From NCBI RefSeq assembly GCF_000143415.4, contig NW_003314294.1, positions 1,230,416 to 1,294,415 on the forward strand: DNA of 64,000 bases. Direction: 5' to 3'. This DNA is from Selaginella moellendorffii (Eukaryota > Plantae > Lycopodiophyta). The notes beneath the pieces are model-generated. The model did no database searches. It was not told the origin of the DNA and saw only the letters and a program-made list of their open reading frames with translations. The translations under genes and the position numbers were made by a program. Every line of letters starts with the position of its first letter. Position 1 is the first letter of the stretch. Shown here piece by piece: positions 9,294 to 51,920 of the stretch.

Positions 9294-10067
9294 ATGGACG
9301 AGGTGATAATATTCATAGTCTCAATTATAGACGATTCAAAGGCACATGACACTGCCCTCTCCCGCTGCTGGAACGTCGTCGACGATGCGAATGCAGCGCT
9401 TCCCTGGATCATGAGCAAGGATGGCAAGCACAGGATTCTGCTAGCTATGGACCTGGAAACCCGCGAGGGAGTCGCGCTCGTCATCGCCATGGCTGTGGAG
9501 CACTTTGAAGAGCAGTGTGATCCACAGGTGGAGGAGATTAGCGTCTGTGTCTTGAGCGTTTTTCACGTCATGACAATCGAGAAAGGCGATCTGAATCTCC
9601 TGGGCAGAAAGACGAAGACGAAGATCACGGCGACTCGCTCCACTGCGCTGCCGCTGGTTTCTCTTGGACGGCCATCTTTTTGTGCTCATTGCCAAGGAGA
9701 GGTGGAGGTGAAGCTCCAGGGATGGCTTCGATGGTCTAGTGAGCTACTTGAGGTGGGTTTCTTTGCGTTTATCCGATCTTTTGGTGTGACTCACAGGAGC
9801 AAAGAGGAAGATTTCATGGACATTAACATCTTAGGCCAGAGGTTTTGCAGCGCTCTTGAGACGACCGAGTGGTTTGAGGTGGCTCTGTCGCCTGGAACCA
9901 CAAAGCAGCGGCCAAGACAGGAAATCAAAGCCCAAATCTTTGGCAGTGGTAATTTGCCTCTCTGGTTTACGTGTTCAGAATTAGTCCTTTCTACAATCAA
10001 ACCACATTTTTTTACCAGTATGAAAACCCTAAATTTTAAATTTCCCGCTAAACCTAAGCTCCACTAA
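9294..10067 (+). CDS. Uncharacterised coding segment, possibly further exons of the upstream fusion gene
   Basis: 257-aa ORF in the same frame as the upstream exon, separated from it by a single stop at 9252. Coding-like composition with an intron-like stretch at ~9753-9797. Confidence 0.45.
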   Translation: MDEVIIFIVSIIDDSKAHDTALSRCWNVVDDANAALPWIMSKDGKHRILLAMDLETREGVALVIAMAVEHFEEQCDPQVEEISVCVLSVFHVMTIEKGDLNLLGRKTKTKITATRSTALPLVSLGRPSFCAHCQGEVEVKLQGWLRWSSELLEVGFFAFIRSFGVTHRSKEEDFMDINILGQRFCSALETTEWFEVALSPGTTKQRPRQEIKAQIFGSGNLPLWFTCSELVLSTIKPHFFTSMKTLNFKFPAKPKLH

Positions 10068-34358: not shown

Positions 34359-34507
34359 GATCAGGTCGATGAGGACTAAGATTGCTACAATGATGATTTG
34401 GAAAAGTCCATGTTTCAAGCTGTAGGTAGTGTGACTTGGTGAAGCACCGAAGACTATGCGCGCGTGGTCCTCACGCGAGGCGAGGTATCAAAGGAGTGGG
34501 GAATCTT

Positions 34508-36256
34508 ATGCTCCGGGCGGGAGGAGGAGGAGGAGGAGGAGCAGCGCGTTTAGTCGAGGAAAGAGAACTTTTGGTAGCACTGATCAAGGAGTGTGGAGAT
34601 GCCCAAGACCTCAGCGAGGCTCGCCGCCTCCACTCCCACATCCTCAACACCGCCCACAACCGGAACCGCTTGGTGGCCAACTTCACCATCGAGATGTATG
34701 GCAACTGCGGCAGCGTGGAGGACGCACGTCGCGCGTTTGAGTCCATCACCCAGCCCAACCTCTTCTCCTGGAGCATCATCACCCAGGCGTATGCCCAGAA
34801 TGGGCATGTTGCCGAGGCCAAGAACCTGTTCGACAGGATGCCGCAGCGGAATCTCGTGTGCTGGAACACTCTCATGTCCGGGCTCGCGCAGGTCGGTCAG
34901 GCAAGCCAGGCTCGCTCCGTCCTACTCAAGATGCCGCAGCACGGCGTCGTCTCCCTCAACATCCTTCTCGGAGCGTATGCCCAACTCGGGCATGTGTCGG
35001 ATGCCAAGTCCGTGTTTGATGCGATTCGACAGCCCAATACGATCTCCACGAACCTCATCATCTCCGCTTACGCCCAGGCCGGCCACCTCCAAGCCGCCGA
35101 GGACGTCTTCTCGGCTGGCTGCTGTCCGGTGGACGAGATCTCCTGGAACACTCTGGCCATGGGCTACTGCCAGAGCAAGCAAATGGAGCGTGCCAAGGCT
35201 GTGTTTGATGCGACACCGCAGCCCAGCGTGTTCTCGTGGACCATTCTCCTGCAGGGCTATGCGCAAGCTGGGGAAGTTGGCAAGGCCAGGCTCGCTTTCG
35301 AGCGGATGCCCGCGTGGAACAAGGTGGCGTGGACGGCCATGGTGGCGAGCTACGGCGATCAGGGCTTGACGGGCGAGGCGTGGAGGGTGTTTGAGCAGGC
35401 CCCGCACAAAGACCTGGTGCTCTTCAACGCCATGGCCGCGGCGTATGCTCGAAACGGGCTTTGCGACGAAGCGGACGCGCTGCTGGGGAGAATGCCGGCG
35501 TGGAGCGTCATGACATGGAACACCGCCGTGTCCGTGCGCGCGCTCCACGGTCGCCTCGACTCCGCCAAGGCGCTGTTTGACGCCTCTCCGGCACCCGACA
35601 TCGTGACATGGAACTGCCTGGTGGCGGGGTACACGGGCAGCGGCCGGCTTGCGTCGGCCGTGGACATTCTGGCCAAGATGCCGGTGTGGAGCTCCATCGG
35701 CTGGAACGCACTGCTTCGCGCCTACTCGCTTGCCGGGGACGTTGGCAGCGCGAAGGCGCTGTTCGACGCAATGCCCGACCCGGACGTGGTGGCATGGACG
35801 GAGATGACGTCGGTGCTGGCCAGCGCGGGGCTGGGCGATGCCGCCATGACCAGCTTCCAGGAGATGCAGCTGTCGGGGCAGCAGCTGGACGACATGGTGA
35901 TGACAAGCATCCTGTCGGCGTGCAGCCATGCCGGGCTGGTCGTCGAGGGTGTCTTCCTGTTCGCCACAATGTGTAGCGACCATGGGATGGCGGCAGCGCG
36001 GGAGCATTGGTCGTGCATGGTGGACTTGCTCGGGCGGGCTGGCCGCGTGGGAGATGCGCACCATATCATGGCCGAGATGCCAATCGACCCGGATCCGGCC
36101 ACGTTCAAGTCGTTCCTCAGTGCCTGCCGCAACGCTCCCCCTATAGTTGAAGTCATGGCATCTGCGCGCGGGGCCGCCGAGGCCATCACCCACCTCGAGC
36201 CCGGCCGCTCCTACCCCTACGTGCTTCTCGCCAACCTCAGTCAACCCTGGTCATGA
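34508..36256 (+). CDS. PLS-class pentatricopeptide repeat protein with truncated E domain
   Basis: Single exon with tandem ~31-aa repeats (SW..LL.AYAQ.G...A...F..MP). Ends HWSCMVDLLGRAG...LEPGRSYPYVLLANL; no DYW domain. Confidence 0.93.
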   Translation: MLRAGGGGGGGAARLVEERELLVALIKECGDAQDLSEARRLHSHILNTAHNRNRLVANFTIEMYGNCGSVEDARRAFESITQPNLFSWSIITQAYAQNGHVAEAKNLFDRMPQRNLVCWNTLMSGLAQVGQASQARSVLLKMPQHGVVSLNILLGAYAQLGHVSDAKSVFDAIRQPNTISTNLIISAYAQAGHLQAAEDVFSAGCCPVDEISWNTLAMGYCQSKQMERAKAVFDATPQPSVFSWTILLQGYAQAGEVGKARLAFERMPAWNKVAWTAMVASYGDQGLTGEAWRVFEQAPHKDLVLFNAMAAAYARNGLCDEADALLGRMPAWSVMTWNTAVSVRALHGRLDSAKALFDASPAPDIVTWNCLVAGYTGSGRLASAVDILAKMPVWSSIGWNALLRAYSLAGDVGSAKALFDAMPDPDVVAWTEMTSVLASAGLGDAAMTSFQEMQLSGQQLDDMVMTSILSACSHAGLVVEGVFLFATMCSDHGMAAAREHWSCMVDLLGRAGRVGDAHHIMAEMPIDPDPATFKSFLSACRNAPPIVEVMASARGAAEAITHLEPGRSYPYVLLANLSQPWS

Positions 36257-36361
36257 CGGTCAAGTCAAGTCAGGTCATGACAGGTCAACGTAGGCGGACG
36301 ACTCAGGCAAGATGGACGCACAGGTGAGCTTGTAGCTAGGGCAAATTGGTGAGGAGGGAGG

Positions 36362-46037: not shown

Positions 46038-46705
46038 GGCGGAGCGATCTCTCTCCCCCGCCCCGCGCGCCCCGCGTTAAACCCTAGTGTAAACCCTCGC
46101 CGCTCGTTCTCTCGCCCCACCCAGGATAGCAAGCCAAGCAAGAGATTGGGCTAGCAAGATATTTCCACAGCCGGGAGCACATCCTGGCCGTCCATATCCA
46201 ACGGCGTAGATGCAACCTTCACTAGCTATTAAAACCTTAATCTTTGATTAATGCCAAACCTTCGAAGTTGTGCTTTGTTCGAGGCGTGTGAAATGCACCT
46301 ATATTCCTTGTGAATGGTGGGAGGAGAATTTGCATTAGAAAACAGTAGAGATTTAGTGGAAATTGGCAAGGAGAGCTGATTATATAAATGAGGGTAAAAA
46401 TAAAGGATTAACAATGTTTTAAAATGTTTTTTAGTAAGCAATGAAGTGTTAATGAAATTGCACTCAGTTAACCATTAATAATAAAGCATCTTTAACATCT
46501 CTTGCAACTTTCTAAATTCTCAATTGGGCACAGTGTAGTGGAATTTGCAAGGTATAATGCCTTTTGATCTCAGTTCTAATAAAGACCATGTTAGATCTAA
46601 GTGGCAATTGCAAAATTAATTGGATCTTGCAAGTTAAATAACTGGGAATTACATGTGTGTCTGATTGAGGGGTCTATTAAGTCTTTAAATATTTGTTGGG
46701 AATTC

Positions 46706-47005
46706 TAGTACTCTCACCACATTCTTGGAAAGCTTGCTGTGCAACTGGTCATATAGCAAAATATCCATTAGTAATGTGTGAACAAGGGTTTAAGGGTTAT
46801 GGTTCTTGGAAGATAGTAAAGGATATAATATGTTTTTAAATATTTATTAAGAACTCTAGTACTCTCACCAACTTTGTGCTTTTGCATTCTTGAAAAAACT
46901 TGCCATACAGTTTGCCACATGGCAAAATATCCATTGGTGACATCCTGCACAAAGTTTTAAGGGTTAGGGCTTTTAATTGAAAAATTATAGTAAAGGATAT
47001 GATAA
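46706..47005. repeat. Diverged tandem duplication (~150-bp unit) in an AT-rich island
   Basis: ctagtactctcacca...gcaaaatatccatt...ttaagggtta...atagtaaaggatat occurs twice, starting near 46706 and 46857. Confidence 0.75.
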
Positions 47006-47168
47006 ATAACTTTCTGACCTGAAATTTATCGCAAGAGAAATTAATTTATTATGTCATCAGATTTGGAAACTTACAGGATTGAAACTAGATCCTATTTCAC
47101 AATTTTTCCATTTACAGATCACCTATGTTGGTATTTTCATAAAAAGAGACTATATCAAATGCCGGAAG

Positions 47169-49057
47169 TTAAAATCCGGGGCTGAAAGCATGGAACCTCC
47201 AGTAGACAAGGCGCGCCCTGGCACCTCTCAAGGAGCTCCACTGCTTGCAAGCGATGGCCTCGGTCGCACTCTCGACGCTGGTGAATTCCACCAGAGCTTC
47301 CCTCCGCTTCCTCCCCTCCCTCGCCTGCGACACCTCCACCTTGACGATCACACCATGCTCCGCGAAGTGCCTCACCACGTCCACCTCTTGGATGTCCGGC
47401 ACCAGGTTGGAGGCGTGGATCACCTTGGTCGGGGGGCAGCACTTCTTGGCATACGCGTACAGGAACCGGTTCCCAGTCCCCCAGCTGTAGAAATGCGTGT
47501 GAGGGTGCCGCAAGCATGAGTGATCTGATAGAGTGATCTCCATTTTCTTTCCAAACAGTGAAACTCCCTGCAACCACGCTTCAGCAGTGACAAGCACAAG
47601 CTAAACTCGACATGATACCTTGAGGCAGGCCATCGCAAGGTCCGCTTGGAAGCCGTCGCTCATCTGTACCAGTGCGAGCTCTGGTTTCACAAAGGAGCCT
47701 TTGATTCGCAGGACATTTCCGTAGACCGAGAAGAGGTTGTACAGCTTGTGCTCGTTTATCATCTGCAAGCCACAAGCCACAAGCCACGGCGTTCAAGCTG
47801 TTCAGTCCTACGTAGTTGAAGGACCGCTGAGACGACCTCATACCCGCGTGTTTAGATTCGAGAGGAGCAGCACGCAGCGCTGGTTCGTTGTTGGACCTGA
47901 AGGCAACAGCCCGGAATTCCCTGGCTTGTAGCACAGCAAGACAAAAACGTATCAAACTCTGTACCGACATCGGACACCGGGTTTCATCAGGTGAGCGTTT
48001 CCTGCGCCGAGAATGGACGGAAACCTTGCACTTGGCAAAGAACTGTTCGTGAAGTCTCTGCCAGAAAAGAACCACCAGATATACATGACTGGGAGAAAAG
48101 AAAACCGGAACGTAGTACCTGGAAAGATCGTTATTGCATGCCACACGAACTTCGTCGGTCCTGGAAACGGGAGAAAGTGGAAGGACGAGTGACTAGAAAG
48201 GTACAAACTCACCTTGAGTATTGGATTTCCATAGTGCACGACCCGTTCAAGATCTTGCTTTTGTGGAGACGATGCTTGGCTTCACGAGCATCTCGTGGAG
48301 AAGCGTACTGGATGAGTGCCTGCGCAAGCACTGTGGAAGAAAGACATGAAAAGCCGCTATGAAACGAGGCAGGCCTACCAGTTGACTGAGGAAAGATGGC
48401 AATCTTCTCGATGGGCCCGAAACTCTTGAAGGTCTGATGGAGGGCATCCACGGTAACGTGACACACCGAGTCTAGCATCGTCACTAGAAGGATTGGGCTG
48501 CATGTTTCCTGAGCTTGGCGCTCTTTAGCAAGAAAAAGAAAGCAAAGTGGTCGACTACCTCGGCCGGATAGAGCTCTTTACGAGCAGAGAACTGGATGGA
48601 AACGTCCCTCCCCCTGAGAAGAGATCTCAGTTACGAGCGAAAAGGAGAATGCGAGCACTCCAACCTTACGGTTGCCTGGCGCGAAGCAAAGTGCCGGATG
48701 ACTAGAAAGGCCTTGGCGATATCTTGCATTTGAACAAAAGCCTTTCACAGCGAGAGCAAGGCAACAGTGAGCAACAAAGAAGCTCTCACTCGCTTACTTG
48801 ATTCCATGTCCTCAAGAGAACAATGCCGCTGACTCTTCCAAATGGGCGAACAAGCTCCACAAGATCGTCCTAGGTAGGAAACACAAACGATTCTTCTTCT
48901 TGCGACAATCCGATCGATCTCTTCTACTCACCTCGGCCACATCCTGCGCCAGGTTGCGGAGATGGAGCACCTTGCAGGGGGCAGGATTTGGGAGCTCGGG
49001 CTCGCGAGGATACGCGCCGCAAGCAAAGCGATGGTAGCAGCGCCTGGGACGAAGCAT
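47169..49057 (-). CDS. PTB3/hnRNP-L-like four-RRM protein, paralog A
   Basis: CKVLHLRNL, VTVDALHQTFKSFGPIEKI, QALIQY, GSCTMEIQYS, INEHKLYNLFSVYGN, CCPPTKVIHASNL, EALVEF..ATEAIACK. Confidence 0.85.
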
Positions 49058-49146
49058 TCCCCCTTTAAAGCCTTTAAAACATACCTTTCGCTGTGATTTA
49101 GGGTTTATCGATTAGGGTTTAAGGGTTATGTAGAGAGGGGCGAAGA
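49058..49146. promoter_or_regulatory. 89-bp bidirectional intergenic region with two telo-boxes
   Basis: ttagggttt at 49098-49106 and 49112-49120, between divergent ATGs at 49057 and 49147. Confidence 0.7.
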
Positions 49147-51078
49147 ATGCACCAAGCTGCGCCGCGGCGCCTGCTCGTCAGGAGCGCAGATCTCTTCTTC
49201 TCCAGGCGCTACTGTGCTTCTCCTGCCGCTGGCGCTCTAGAATCCAAATCGCTCGACGAGAATGGATCAAAGCTCGAGCTGGAGCCGTCCAAGGTCTTAC
49301 ATTTTCGCAATCTCACGCCATACATAAGACGGATGAGCGGTCTAGATCGCAGAAAAGAAGATAACATAAGGATTTCGGATTTGTTTTGCCAGGGTGAGCT
49401 TGAGAAACTGGTTCGTCCTTTTGGAAGCGTGACGAGTTACCGATTGACGACAAGGACTCAGGTGTGTACTTGTCAACAGAGAAGCTCAAAGGATCATTTC
49501 GTGTCTTTCTTTCAGGCGCTCTTGGAGATGAAAAATGTGAAGCAGGCTAAGAAGGTCGTTGATCACTTTTCCTCGGAAAAGGCACGCGTGAAGTAAGTGA
49601 TTTTTGTCTCCTTTTCCGTTTGTTCCAATTGCGTGAAAACAGGAAAGCAGAAATCTATGTTGGATTCTCACGGTTTCAAGAGCTAGAAAAGGATGTGTCC
49701 CGTCTAGCTGATCCGGTTCGTGCTAGACGTATAGCGTAAAGCCATCTAAAATCCAAACATTCTTTTGCAGAAACAAGGCCCGAGCAGCAAAGTCCTTGCA
49801 GTGACTGTTACCAATCCAATTTATCCTATCGACGTGTATGTGCTGCACAGGGTGTTCAGCCCCCATGGCAGCGTTGAGAAGATAACCATATCCCGCAAGC
49901 TTGGTAAGTTTGTATCACACTTCCGCGTGATGTCTTATGGAATCTATTCGCGTGCAGGTATTTGCGGGTACATACAATTCGATTCCGTAAAAACTGCTGC
50001 TCACGTCAAAGATCTTCTCAATGATCGTCACATTTTCGATGGTTGCTGTAAGATGGAAATACAATATGCCAAGTGTGTGCCTTGTCTGTTTCTTCACTTC
50101 ATCCTTTCTAATCGATAATGTTTTTTAAGGTCCCAGGAACTTGGAGTGTATTTCAATGATGACAACAACAGGTAGAGAGCTCCATGCCAGGCCCAAGCTC
50201 TCAGGCTAATCGTTTCTGTGCAGGGACTTCAAGGACACTTCCATTCCTTCAAGAGTACGGAGCGATCCATCGATTCTGGGTGCTCCGCCCGTTGAAAGTG
50301 TACCGGCACTAACTGCAGAGGACGCGGCCGCTGGAGCACCAGCCGTTGTTCCCACGCCTTTCATCGGCCGGCGGAAGCGGGTTGTGCGCGTGTCCAACTT
50401 GAACGTCGAGGTAATCTTCTCCTTCTGGAAGTTCGGCTGATTCTTATGCTTGGACTTGCAGAAAGTTGATGAGGACAAGCTCTTCAATCTCTTTTCTCCA
50501 TATGGAAAGATAAGAAAGGTGCAGGTGATAAAAGTCACCGGTCAGGGCCTGATAGAGATGAGCGACGCGTTTCAAGCGGAACTGGCGTCGGCCTGTCTCA
50601 AGGTAACTTCCTCCCTTTATGGAGACATGTTCAAAACTAACGTCGGCTACCATGGCTACAGGGTGCGCGGGTTTTCGAGAAAGAACTGGACACTGTGGTT
50701 GTAGACAAGGAGCTTAATCTCAACCAGAGCCGGGACTACACAGACGCGCACGACAACATTTTCTTTCCCAGCTTTGTGAGAAACTGTCGCGGTCCCTCGC
50801 CAACAATTTACGTGTGGGGACTCCCTTCAGGTGTCACCGATGCAGAGCTCATCACTCACTTTTCCCCGCATGGCGAGATAGCTGCCACTGAGGTGTTTGC
50901 ATCCGAGGAAGGGAAGCCGCGAGCACGAGTTCGATTTGCTACCAAAGAACAAGCAACCGAAGCTGTCGCTTGCAAGCAGTACAGCGTTGTCAATGGCTCC
51001 ACGATCCGGCTCGCTTTTGCGATCAATGGGAAACCAAAGAAAACGTCTAGCAGTAACGCAGCGGAGGCTGGAGACTAG
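49147..51078 (+). CDS. PTB3/hnRNP-L-like four-RRM protein, paralog B
   Basis: EPSKVLHFRNL, QALLEM, YPIDVYVLHRVFSPHGSVEKI, IFDGCCKMEIQYA, VDEDKLFNLFSPYG, ATEAVACKQYSVVNGSTIRLAF. Confidence 0.88.
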
Positions 51079-51306
51079 CCGAAAGAGAAAGAGGTACTTC
51101 CAAGCTTTCATAAATTCAACGTGTGGACTAAACCATACCAATGACCATTTCTCCTTGGTTGCAGATGTCAACGTTTCTCTCTTGCCTTCGACAGAGAAGC
51201 TGCGAATTGGAACTTTCTACGATTATGCATCACTGTGATGTCCATTTTTGACTTCGCGCAGATTAAAAGGTGTATGTTTCGGCGCACAGCCATCTGAGAG
51301 TTTGCC

Positions 51307-51920
51307 ATGGAGGGACAATCATCAAAGTATCTGATGGCTTGGCTTTTGATAGTAACAATCGAGGTCCACTTCTTGGCAGCGGGGTGTCGGCTGCTAGAGC
51401 ACGAGATCACTTCTCGGGCAGTCGTGGAAGCTTCGGTCTATTGCGAGATTTGCCACGAAGGGCGCAGCATCAAGAACATAGCACTGCCTGGTCCGTACTA
51501 TCTCCATCTCTATAAGTTCCACCAGTTCTAGTGGAGTTTACATTCTCGGCATGGTTTGATCCAGGTGTTGTTGCGTTCCTGGAGTGCAATGGTGCTCGTG
51601 TCAGTGGCAGTAGCACCACGGACTCGTCCGGGAAATGGTCGGTGGATGTTCCCAGCGGCTACAACTTGGAGAGGGATTGCCGGGTGTCCGTGCTCGAGCG
51701 CCCAAGTGGCTGTGGCTTATCGCCGGCCTCCAGCTCCATGCCAGACGTGAGACCGATCATACGAACGAGCAGCGATGGCAGGAGATTTACCGCGGCCGAG
51801 CCTTTCGTTTACAACTCTCGCGATTGTGGCGAGAATGCGTATCGCCCAAGAAGCGCTCGCGCTCTTGCGGCCTCCACGAATGCACTCAGCCTTGGCCCCC
51901 CGGATCCACCGCAGCCTTAG
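51307..51920 (+). CDS. Pollen Ole e 1-like secreted protein
   Basis: Hydrophobic N-terminus, VVEASVYCEIC, one intron, then GVVAFLEC..TTDSSGKW..CRVSVL..C. Confidence 0.7.

Follow-up and report, generated by a model that had tools for sequence, protein, structure and literature searches.

The closest described relatives of the genes treated here are the polypyrimidine tract-binding (PTB) proteins, which comprise plant PTB3, the animal proteins PTBP1, PTBP2 and PTBP3, and the related hnRNP L. In Arabidopsis, PTB1-3 localize to the nucleus and to P-bodies (PMC4030149). A further point of comparison is provided by the ORRM and chloroplast cpRNP families, nucleus-encoded proteins with RNA recognition motifs (RRMs) that carry N-terminal transit sequences and act on organellar RNA. 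Here, we describe a locus in the lycophyte Selaginella moellendorffii at which two strongly diverged PTB3 paralogs, genes A and B, lie head to head on opposite strands with their start codons 90 nucleotides (nt) apart (positions 47169-51078). Positions refer to the window, the 64,000-nt stretch of contig NW_003314294.1 that was analyzed. The window represents the haplotype of a 1.85-Mb scaffold, and L002 denotes the locus on the other haplotype. From the letters of the window, the pair was originally predicted to encode pyrimidine-binding splicing factors that had been retargeted as a co-expressed organellar RNA editing or splicing pair. We find that A and B are transcribed members of the PTB3 family, strongly diverged yet constrained, with N-terminal extensions that are unique within the family sample.

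Results

Gene structure and expression of the head-to-head pair

Transcript contigs from four runs (X1, X5, X6, and X10) of four studies were aligned to positions 46700-51500, and A and B were each represented by contigs in all four runs. Gene A (47169..49057, minus strand) consists of 11 exons and encodes 434 residues. In plus-strand coordinates, exons 1-6 lie at 48932-49057, 48798-48869, 48665-48741, 48559-48613, 48379-48508, and 48213-48330, and exons 7-11 at 48119-48160, 47969-48057, 47844-47896, 47619-47762, and 47169-47567. Five of the introns are supported by contig joints, and the others were placed by contig boundaries, GT..AG sites, and the reading frame. Gene B (49147..51078, plus strand) has 10 coding exons. 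In its 466-residue form, exons 1-5 lie at 49147-49293, 49393-49461, 49516-49592, 49643-49715, and 49771-49903, and exons 6-10 at 49958-50072, 50130-50171, 50224-50410, 50462-50602, and 50662-51078; GT..AG joints were found in contigs for nine of its nine coding introns. The introns of both genes are very short (48-99 nt).

The translation of A is identical to RefSeq protein P0275 (434 residues, XP_024537922.1). Gene B corresponds to P0271 (466 residues, XP_002977135.1) when spliced with a 99-nt first intron and to P0269 (479 residues, XP_024537920.1) when spliced with a 60-nt first intron. Since NCBI names the RefSeq products of both genes polypyrimidine tract-binding protein homolog 3, the two genes are already annotated. 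The two proteins share 33% identity. Two strongly diverged four-RRM genes are thus present where they had been predicted, as borne out by the contig joints, the RefSeq identity, the Pfam matches described below, and the low identity. Literature searches yielded no publication that deals with Selaginella PTBs, with the locus tags of A and B, or with a PTB that has a transit peptide.

The N-termini quoted in the original prediction, MLRPRRCYHRFACG and MHQAAPRRLLVRSADLFFSRRYCAS, occur exactly in the spliced models of the pair. In both genes, no earlier ATG follows the upstream in-frame stop, which lies 27 nt before the start in B and 57 nt before it in A, and the next in-frame Met of either gene falls within RRM1. 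Contigs end at 49082 on the A side (X6) and at 49114-49127 on the B side. Because they extend past the ATGs at 49057 (A) and 49147 (B), both ATGs are transcribed, although the contigs cannot fix the true transcription starts. Transcripts beginning downstream of the ATGs had been named as a check on the prediction, and the contigs, which span both ATGs, gave no refutation.

Domain content and family membership

Pfam signatures in P0275 (A) and P0269 (B) consist of RRM_1 (four stretches), RRM_5, and RRM_8. The RRM_5 match (PF13893, cut-off 27 bits) scores 117 bits in A and 80 bits in B, and the RRM_8 match (PF11835, cut-off 26.2 bits) scores 37 and 46 bits, respectively. An AlphaFold2 model of B (P0269), built on a 54-member alignment, contains four beta-alpha-beta-beta-alpha-beta RRM folds with a predicted local distance difference test score (pLDDT) of ∼90. 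The RRM3-4 didomain of this predicted structure superposes on that of nPTB (4cq1) with a template modeling (TM) score of 0.82 and a root-mean-square deviation of 2.7 Å over 189 columns, as compared to TM scores of 0.77 for hnRNP L RRM34 (3to8) and 0.74 for PTB1 RBD34 (2adc).

Relatives were gathered in two rounds, first with the last exon of A in a search that used no profile and then with full-length database entries in word searches. The top database matches of A and B are all named PTB homolog 3, and PTBP3 proteins are also among the matches. The closest relatives are plant PTB3s (35-45% identity), and those outside Selaginella share only 35-42% identity. A sequence search of the PDB with the exon encoding RRM3-4 recovered PTB1 and PTB2 but not hnRNP L. 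The label "PTB3/hnRNP-L-like" given to the pair is therefore upheld in its PTB3 part by the database matches and the tree described below, whereas its hnRNP L part is disfavored by the PDB search and the lower TM score. Membership in the ORRM family was also considered and is ruled out by the four PTB-type RRMs and by relatives that are all PTB3s.

A diverged Selaginella clade beside a canonical PTB3

The genome contains a third diverged copy, C (P0302, 465 residues, GL377586.1). It also contains the separate canonical PTB3 for which a phylogenetic check had been proposed (P0303/P0307), which starts with MTEPSKV. In Diphasiastrum, Sphagnum, Adiantum, Picea, Magnolia, and Mesotaenium, PTB3 has a similar start. 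In a maximum-likelihood tree of 30 family members, A, B, and C form one clade (support 93/91) with A and C as closest relatives (96/90), and this clade is nested in a streptophyte PTB3 group that consists of Mesotaenium and the land plants (97/88). The end branches leading to A, B, and C measure 1.4, 2.47, and 1.02 changes per site, respectively, versus ∼0.2 for canonical members. Long-branch attraction is a concern for the A/B/C clade; however, the three copies share derived residues in RRM1 (HF where all others have YY). Approximately unbiased tests rejected none of the alternatives, be it a Selaginella-only origin (p 0.09), a lycophyte origin (p 0.12), or B and C as sisters (p 0.10). Word searches found no ortholog of A, B, or C outside S. 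moellendorffii, a blank that does not prove absence.

The extent of divergence was further measured over 149 conserved columns, defined as those shared by at least 85% of 49 other members. A retains 103/149 of these, B 86/149, and C 103/149, such that 31-42% are changed. By comparison, the canonical Selaginella protein retains 148, fish PTBP3 113, and Acanthamoeba 114 of the same 149 columns.

Splice variants of both genes

At position 49333, the window carries A where the other haplotype has G (L002:6187), as seen in the haplotype alignment. This change turns CGG/GTGAGC into CGG/ATGAGC and thus destroys the ancestral GT donor of B intron 1. Contigs from X1 and X5 that match the window allele with zero mismatches carry the joint 49293/49393 and use a donor 39 nt upstream (49294), so that the first intron spliced from this allele is 99 nt long and in frame (49294..49392, plus strand). 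Its removal deletes 13 residues, VLHFRNLTPYIRR, which include strand beta1 of RRM1, and reduces the RRM_1 stretches recognized by Pfam from four to three in the 466-residue form. The 479-residue RefSeq form would require an AT..AG intron on the window allele. One X10 contig, from a different genotype, retains beta1, and its coordinates are 3 nt off the 479-residue model.

In gene A, a 72-nt GT..AG intron in the linker between RRM2 and RRM3 (47897..47968, minus strand) contains an in-frame TGA (47952-47954) and is removed in RefSeq P0275. Among the contigs listed, those from X6 and X10 run unbroken over 47844-48057, which means that this intron is kept; its retention would end the product after 241 residues, with RRM1 and RRM2 only. 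A 57-nt intron at 47921-47977 had been considered as a means of removing the TGA and was dropped, as RefSeq uses 47897-47968; neither intron is among the 15 joints listed. RefSeq additionally holds frameshifted A isoforms of 440 (P0151), 459 (P0152), and 483 (P0272) residues. Their second halves are out of frame and without RRM3 or RRM4, and the alternative frame happens to have no stop before the gene ends. PTB genes are known for unproductive splicing in the linker between RRM2 and RRM3, and animal PTBP1 autoregulates through skipping of exon 11, which lies in this linker region.

Constraint on A and B

Long branches and damaged splice forms raise the question of whether A and B are duplicates that drift toward loss, with the N-terminal extensions, the lost donor, and the stop-bearing intron all reflecting relaxed constraint. 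The very long branches and the odd amino-acid make-up of the proteins fit such decay, as do the retention of only 58-69% of the family-conserved positions, the window B allele that lacks the GT of intron 1 and loses beta1 of RRM1, and the premature stop borne by the listed A contigs. The comparison of haplotypes points the other way. In B, 9 non-synonymous and 12 synonymous differences give a ratio of non-synonymous to synonymous polymorphism (pN/pS) of 0.23, and in A, 3 and 5 differences, respectively, give a pN/pS of 0.18, while the introns diverge by ∼2-3%. Single-nucleotide polymorphisms in the transcript contigs, with 7 synonymous and 4 non-synonymous changes, agree with this. Despite the heavy divergence, the reading frames stay open over 10-11 exons (about 440-480 codons), and all introns are GT..AG bar the one polymorphic donor of B intron 1, which is intact on the other haplotype. 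With pN/pS of ∼0.2 and open frames, A and B are constrained genes and not pseudogenes. Expression in four studies and the four confidently predicted RRM folds likewise speak against decay, which we regard as highly improbable.

N-terminal heads of A and B

The extensions that precede RRM1, referred to here as heads, span 28 codons ahead of beta1 in A (P0275:1-28; 48974..49057, minus strand; 65.5% GC) and 48 codons in B (P0269:1-48; 49147..49290, plus strand; 61.1% GC). It had been stated that plant PTB3 begins almost directly with RRM1. This is confirmed by the family, in which beta1 is preceded by exactly five residues in 100 of the 168 full-length members whose beta1 motif could be recognised. 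The predicted Arg-rich extensions are present as well and, within the family sample, are unique to the diverged Selaginella copies. Among 296 members, the A and B entries of Selaginella alone have five Arg in the first 25 residues. In no other PTB3 does any sequence align to the heads, with a query coverage of 87% in all non-Selaginella matches, and heads of 28 and 48 residues were not found in about 100 plant PTB3s.

The A head contains five Arg, no Lys, no Ser or Thr, and several Pro and Cys residues, with its first acidic residue at position 19. The first 25 residues of the B head contain five Arg, no Lys, and a single Asp (D15), and its second half is acidic. The Ser/Thr content is 0 in 28 residues for A and 15% for B, which is like the rest of the protein, as compared to 32% for C. 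The C head is 50 residues long, of which 47 are encoded by a first exon of their own; no acidic residue occurs before position 30, and the head contains an RCF/AT site. Relative to the rest of the protein, the Arg content of the first 25 residues of A and B gives binomial p values of 0.02-0.04. However, stop-free shuffles of the head DNA are equally Arg-rich and acid-poor in 8% (A) and 12% (B) of cases, so the Arg-richness is only modestly above chance for such GC-rich DNA. The heads of A and B share a 12-nt DNA match over the codons for (P/S)RR(C)Y. This hints that the two may be homologous, A having lost the first ∼17 residues, although a match of this length may be due to chance.

Two explanations that assign a targeting function to the heads were weighed against these data. 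The first is that the heads are nuclear or nucleolar localization or RNA-contact elements, like the N-terminal nuclear localization signal (NLS) region of animal PTBP1 that plant PTB3 lacks. Animal PTBs in the sample do have N-terminal extensions of 26-85 residues ahead of RRM1, and the heads of A and B carry PRR and RR clusters. However, these basic clusters are without Lys and follow no classical K/R-rich mono- or bipartite pattern, and the Ser/Thr-rich C head is not NLS-like at all. We therefore consider this explanation the least probable of those discussed here.

The second explanation is organelle import of at least B. In this case, the acquired head would be a mitochondrial or dual presequence, cut near RRY/CA in B, and the four RRMs of the imported proteins would bind pyrimidine-rich organellar transcripts and help in splicing, stabilization, or access to editing sites. 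As judged from the sequences, this is possible but doubtful. Only the diverged Selaginella clade has the extensions, which are missing from the canonical copy in that genome. The first 25 residues of the heads contain five Arg and no Lys, and the first acidic residue is at position 19 in A and 15 in B. The best 11-residue hydrophobic moments, 0.63 for A and 0.66 for B, lie near or at the 95th percentile of the family (0.66; median 0.505). Both ATGs are transcribed and are the sole starts that yield a whole RRM1, the sister copy C carries a presequence of classic type that is encoded by a separate first exon, and fast divergence of genes that are nevertheless constrained is in keeping with a change of compartment. 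The prediction had also placed B close to the R-3 cleavage pattern. This claim is partly borne out, as residues 20-24 (RRY/CA) have Arg at -3 and an aromatic residue, Tyr, at -1; at +1, however, stands Cys and not Ser or Ala. In the AlphaFold2 model, B residues 1-41 have neither helix nor other secondary structure (pLDDT 31-42), which can be read in two ways: the heads are disordered, as presequences are before import, but the model does not show a helix.

Several further observations count against import. The composition of the heads is reached by the 8-12% of GC-rich shuffles noted above, and B has an Asp at position 15. The A head is short, Pro/Cys-rich, and free of Ser/Thr, and its only R-2/R-3-like sites, RCY/H (6-9) and RF/A (10-12), would give a presequence of just 8-11 residues. 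Between haplotypes, the B head differs at 2.8% of bases versus 3.0% in introns; divergence near the intron rate indicates that the head is weakly constrained. The premise of the prediction has weakened too. ORRMs had been treated as an angiosperm matter, which is outdated, as the ORRM genes reported from across Archaeplastida include those of lycophytes (PMC13386178). With ORRM proteins already in lycophytes, there is no gap for an RRM cofactor to fill.

The case for import thus draws mostly on C and on the clade pattern, not on A, and is weaker for A and B than for C. Considered singly, import of B is a reasonable possibility that falls short of an even chance, and import of A is unlikely. 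That both would be imported as a working pair is less likely again, and a purely inferred role in RNA editing ranks lower still. A broader version, in which the whole A/B/C clade would have moved into mitochondria or plastids by means of new presequences and would act on organellar transcripts that are unusually GC-rich and massively edited, also appears unlikely. The N-termini of nearby PPR gene models were tried as same-species examples of transit peptides and were uninformative.

Shared spacer and flanking sequences

The start codons of A and B are separated by an 89-nt spacer (49058..49146) that forms the shared bidirectional promoter and leader region. Within it, the telobox motif AAACCCTAA is present twice on the minus strand (49098-49106 and 49112-49120), and the B leader includes a minimal ATG-TAG upstream open reading frame (49128-49133, plus strand). 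The motif AAACCCTAA occurs seven times in the window versus 0.48 expected, with the remaining copies at 10024, 11497, 14205, 21622, and 31640. At the locus of C (L001), a telobox also lies, as TTTAGGGTTTA, ∼60 nt upstream of the ATG (about 9935-9955). In the S. moellendorffii genome, the motif probably serves generally as a promoter or leader element.

Downstream of its stop codon, B has an intron in the 3' untranslated region (UTR; 51094..51164, plus strand) that starts 15 nt past the stop and whose joint is found in all four runs. The B contigs of all four runs continue past 51492, via an intron at about 51493-51563, into a small open reading frame (ORF; 51307-51920) with a hydrophobic, signal-peptide-like start, and the JGI model P0268 (695 residues) joins B with this ORF. 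Transcription that reads through or is dicistronic could give rise to such contigs, as could overlapping UTRs that were joined during assembly. Beyond the 3' end of A, positions 46930-47125 differ from L002 3700-3985 by indels of 68, 11, 11, and 6 nt, while the genes themselves differ by ∼1-1.5%.

Gene C lies directly downstream of, and on the same strand as, two PPR genes of over 1758 and 691 residues (L001 1-9862). For S. moellendorffii, 3,861 PPR genes are reported (PMC13386178). Since PPR genes are so numerous, and one is found in the window too, the adjacency of C to two of them was given no weight and is probably due to chance. The one in the window is a 582-codon intronless ORF at about 34500-36300 (plus strand) that has many PPR-like matches to the PPR genes flanking C. 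Synteny between B and C via a downstream ABC transporter was also considered and rejected, as the ABC genes share only conserved nucleotide-binding motifs and blastn found nothing.

Discussion

Our preferred explanation, held tentatively, is that A and B are still PTB-type RNA-binding regulators that act in the nucleus and cytosol with altered targets or partners. Under this explanation, duplication of PTB3 would have been followed by rapid functional change in a small Selaginella clade (A, B, and C), while the canonical copy was kept. Each copy begins at an ATG that lies upstream of the ancestral MTEPSKV start, such that what was once GC-rich leader is translated as an Arg-rich, disordered head. 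This head would represent a side effect of the shifted start, or else a disordered tail, rather than an established import signal. The output of A might be tuned by unproductive splicing via the stop-bearing retained intron, and that of B by the allele-dependent loss of beta1 of RRM1. We infer the RNA binding, the place of action, and the regulatory role of the splice variants.

It should be noted that four points weigh against nuclear and cytosolic action. All three diverged copies, and no other of ∼300 PTB3s, have an extension that carries Arg and not Lys in its first 25 residues. The C head, with 32% Ser/Thr, its first acidic residue at position 30, and RCF/AT, is a textbook presequence, and B carries the near R-3 motif. 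Lastly, strong acceleration after duplication beside a kept canonical copy is the pattern expected after relocalization.

If the heads were import signals, organellar RNA metabolism would have drawn in a nuclear splicing regulator, and this in the plant lineage whose RNA editing is the most extreme and whose PPR family is the largest; the pair would then offer candidate non-PPR cofactors there. An organellar A/B/C clade would constitute the first organellar PTB and a class of RRM cofactor independent of ORRM and MORF, with A and B co-expressed from one bidirectional promoter. Even without import, a housekeeping RNA-binding protein has given rise to a fast-evolving, constrained clade of paralogs beside an untouched canonical copy, and a natural B allele removes one strand of RRM1 by loss of a splice donor. 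The genes are annotated and their family is known; the present value of the locus is that of a lead, with import as a reasonable hypothesis.

Among the known systems, C belongs to the same clade as A and B, has the derived RRM1 residues, and carries an N-terminal extension with Arg and without Lys. It differs in that its head is on a separate first exon, is Ser/Thr-rich, and has the clean RCF/AT site, and in that C is not part of a head-to-head pair. Plant PTB3, as represented by Arabidopsis PTB3 and Selaginella P0303/P0307, shares with A and B four RRMs in the same order, the RRM_5, RRM_8, and RRM_1 signatures, a packed RRM3-4 unit (in the model), and membership in the streptophyte PTB3 clade. 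However, the canonical Selaginella protein is only 40-47% identical to A and B, whose branches are 5-12 times longer. Furthermore, canonical PTB3 starts five residues before beta1, whereas A and B are extended by 28 and 48 residues and are arranged head to head.

The animal proteins PTBP1, PTBP2, PTBP3, and hnRNP L resemble A and B in fold, domain order, and the RRM3-4 didomain, and they form paralog families with tissue- or condition-specific members, much like the A/B set. Their identity to A and B is ∼30%, and the N-terminal region of animal PTBs is an NLS and nuclear export signal with Lys and acidic residues, in contrast to the Arg-only heads of A and B. The ORRMs and cpRNPs are the described precedent for nucleus-encoded RRM proteins that enter organelles, and they served as the functional model behind the original prediction. 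Their RRMs are canonical and number one or two, often accompanied by RIP/MORF or Gly-rich parts, whereas A and B derive from PTB3 and are built from four PTB-type RRMs.

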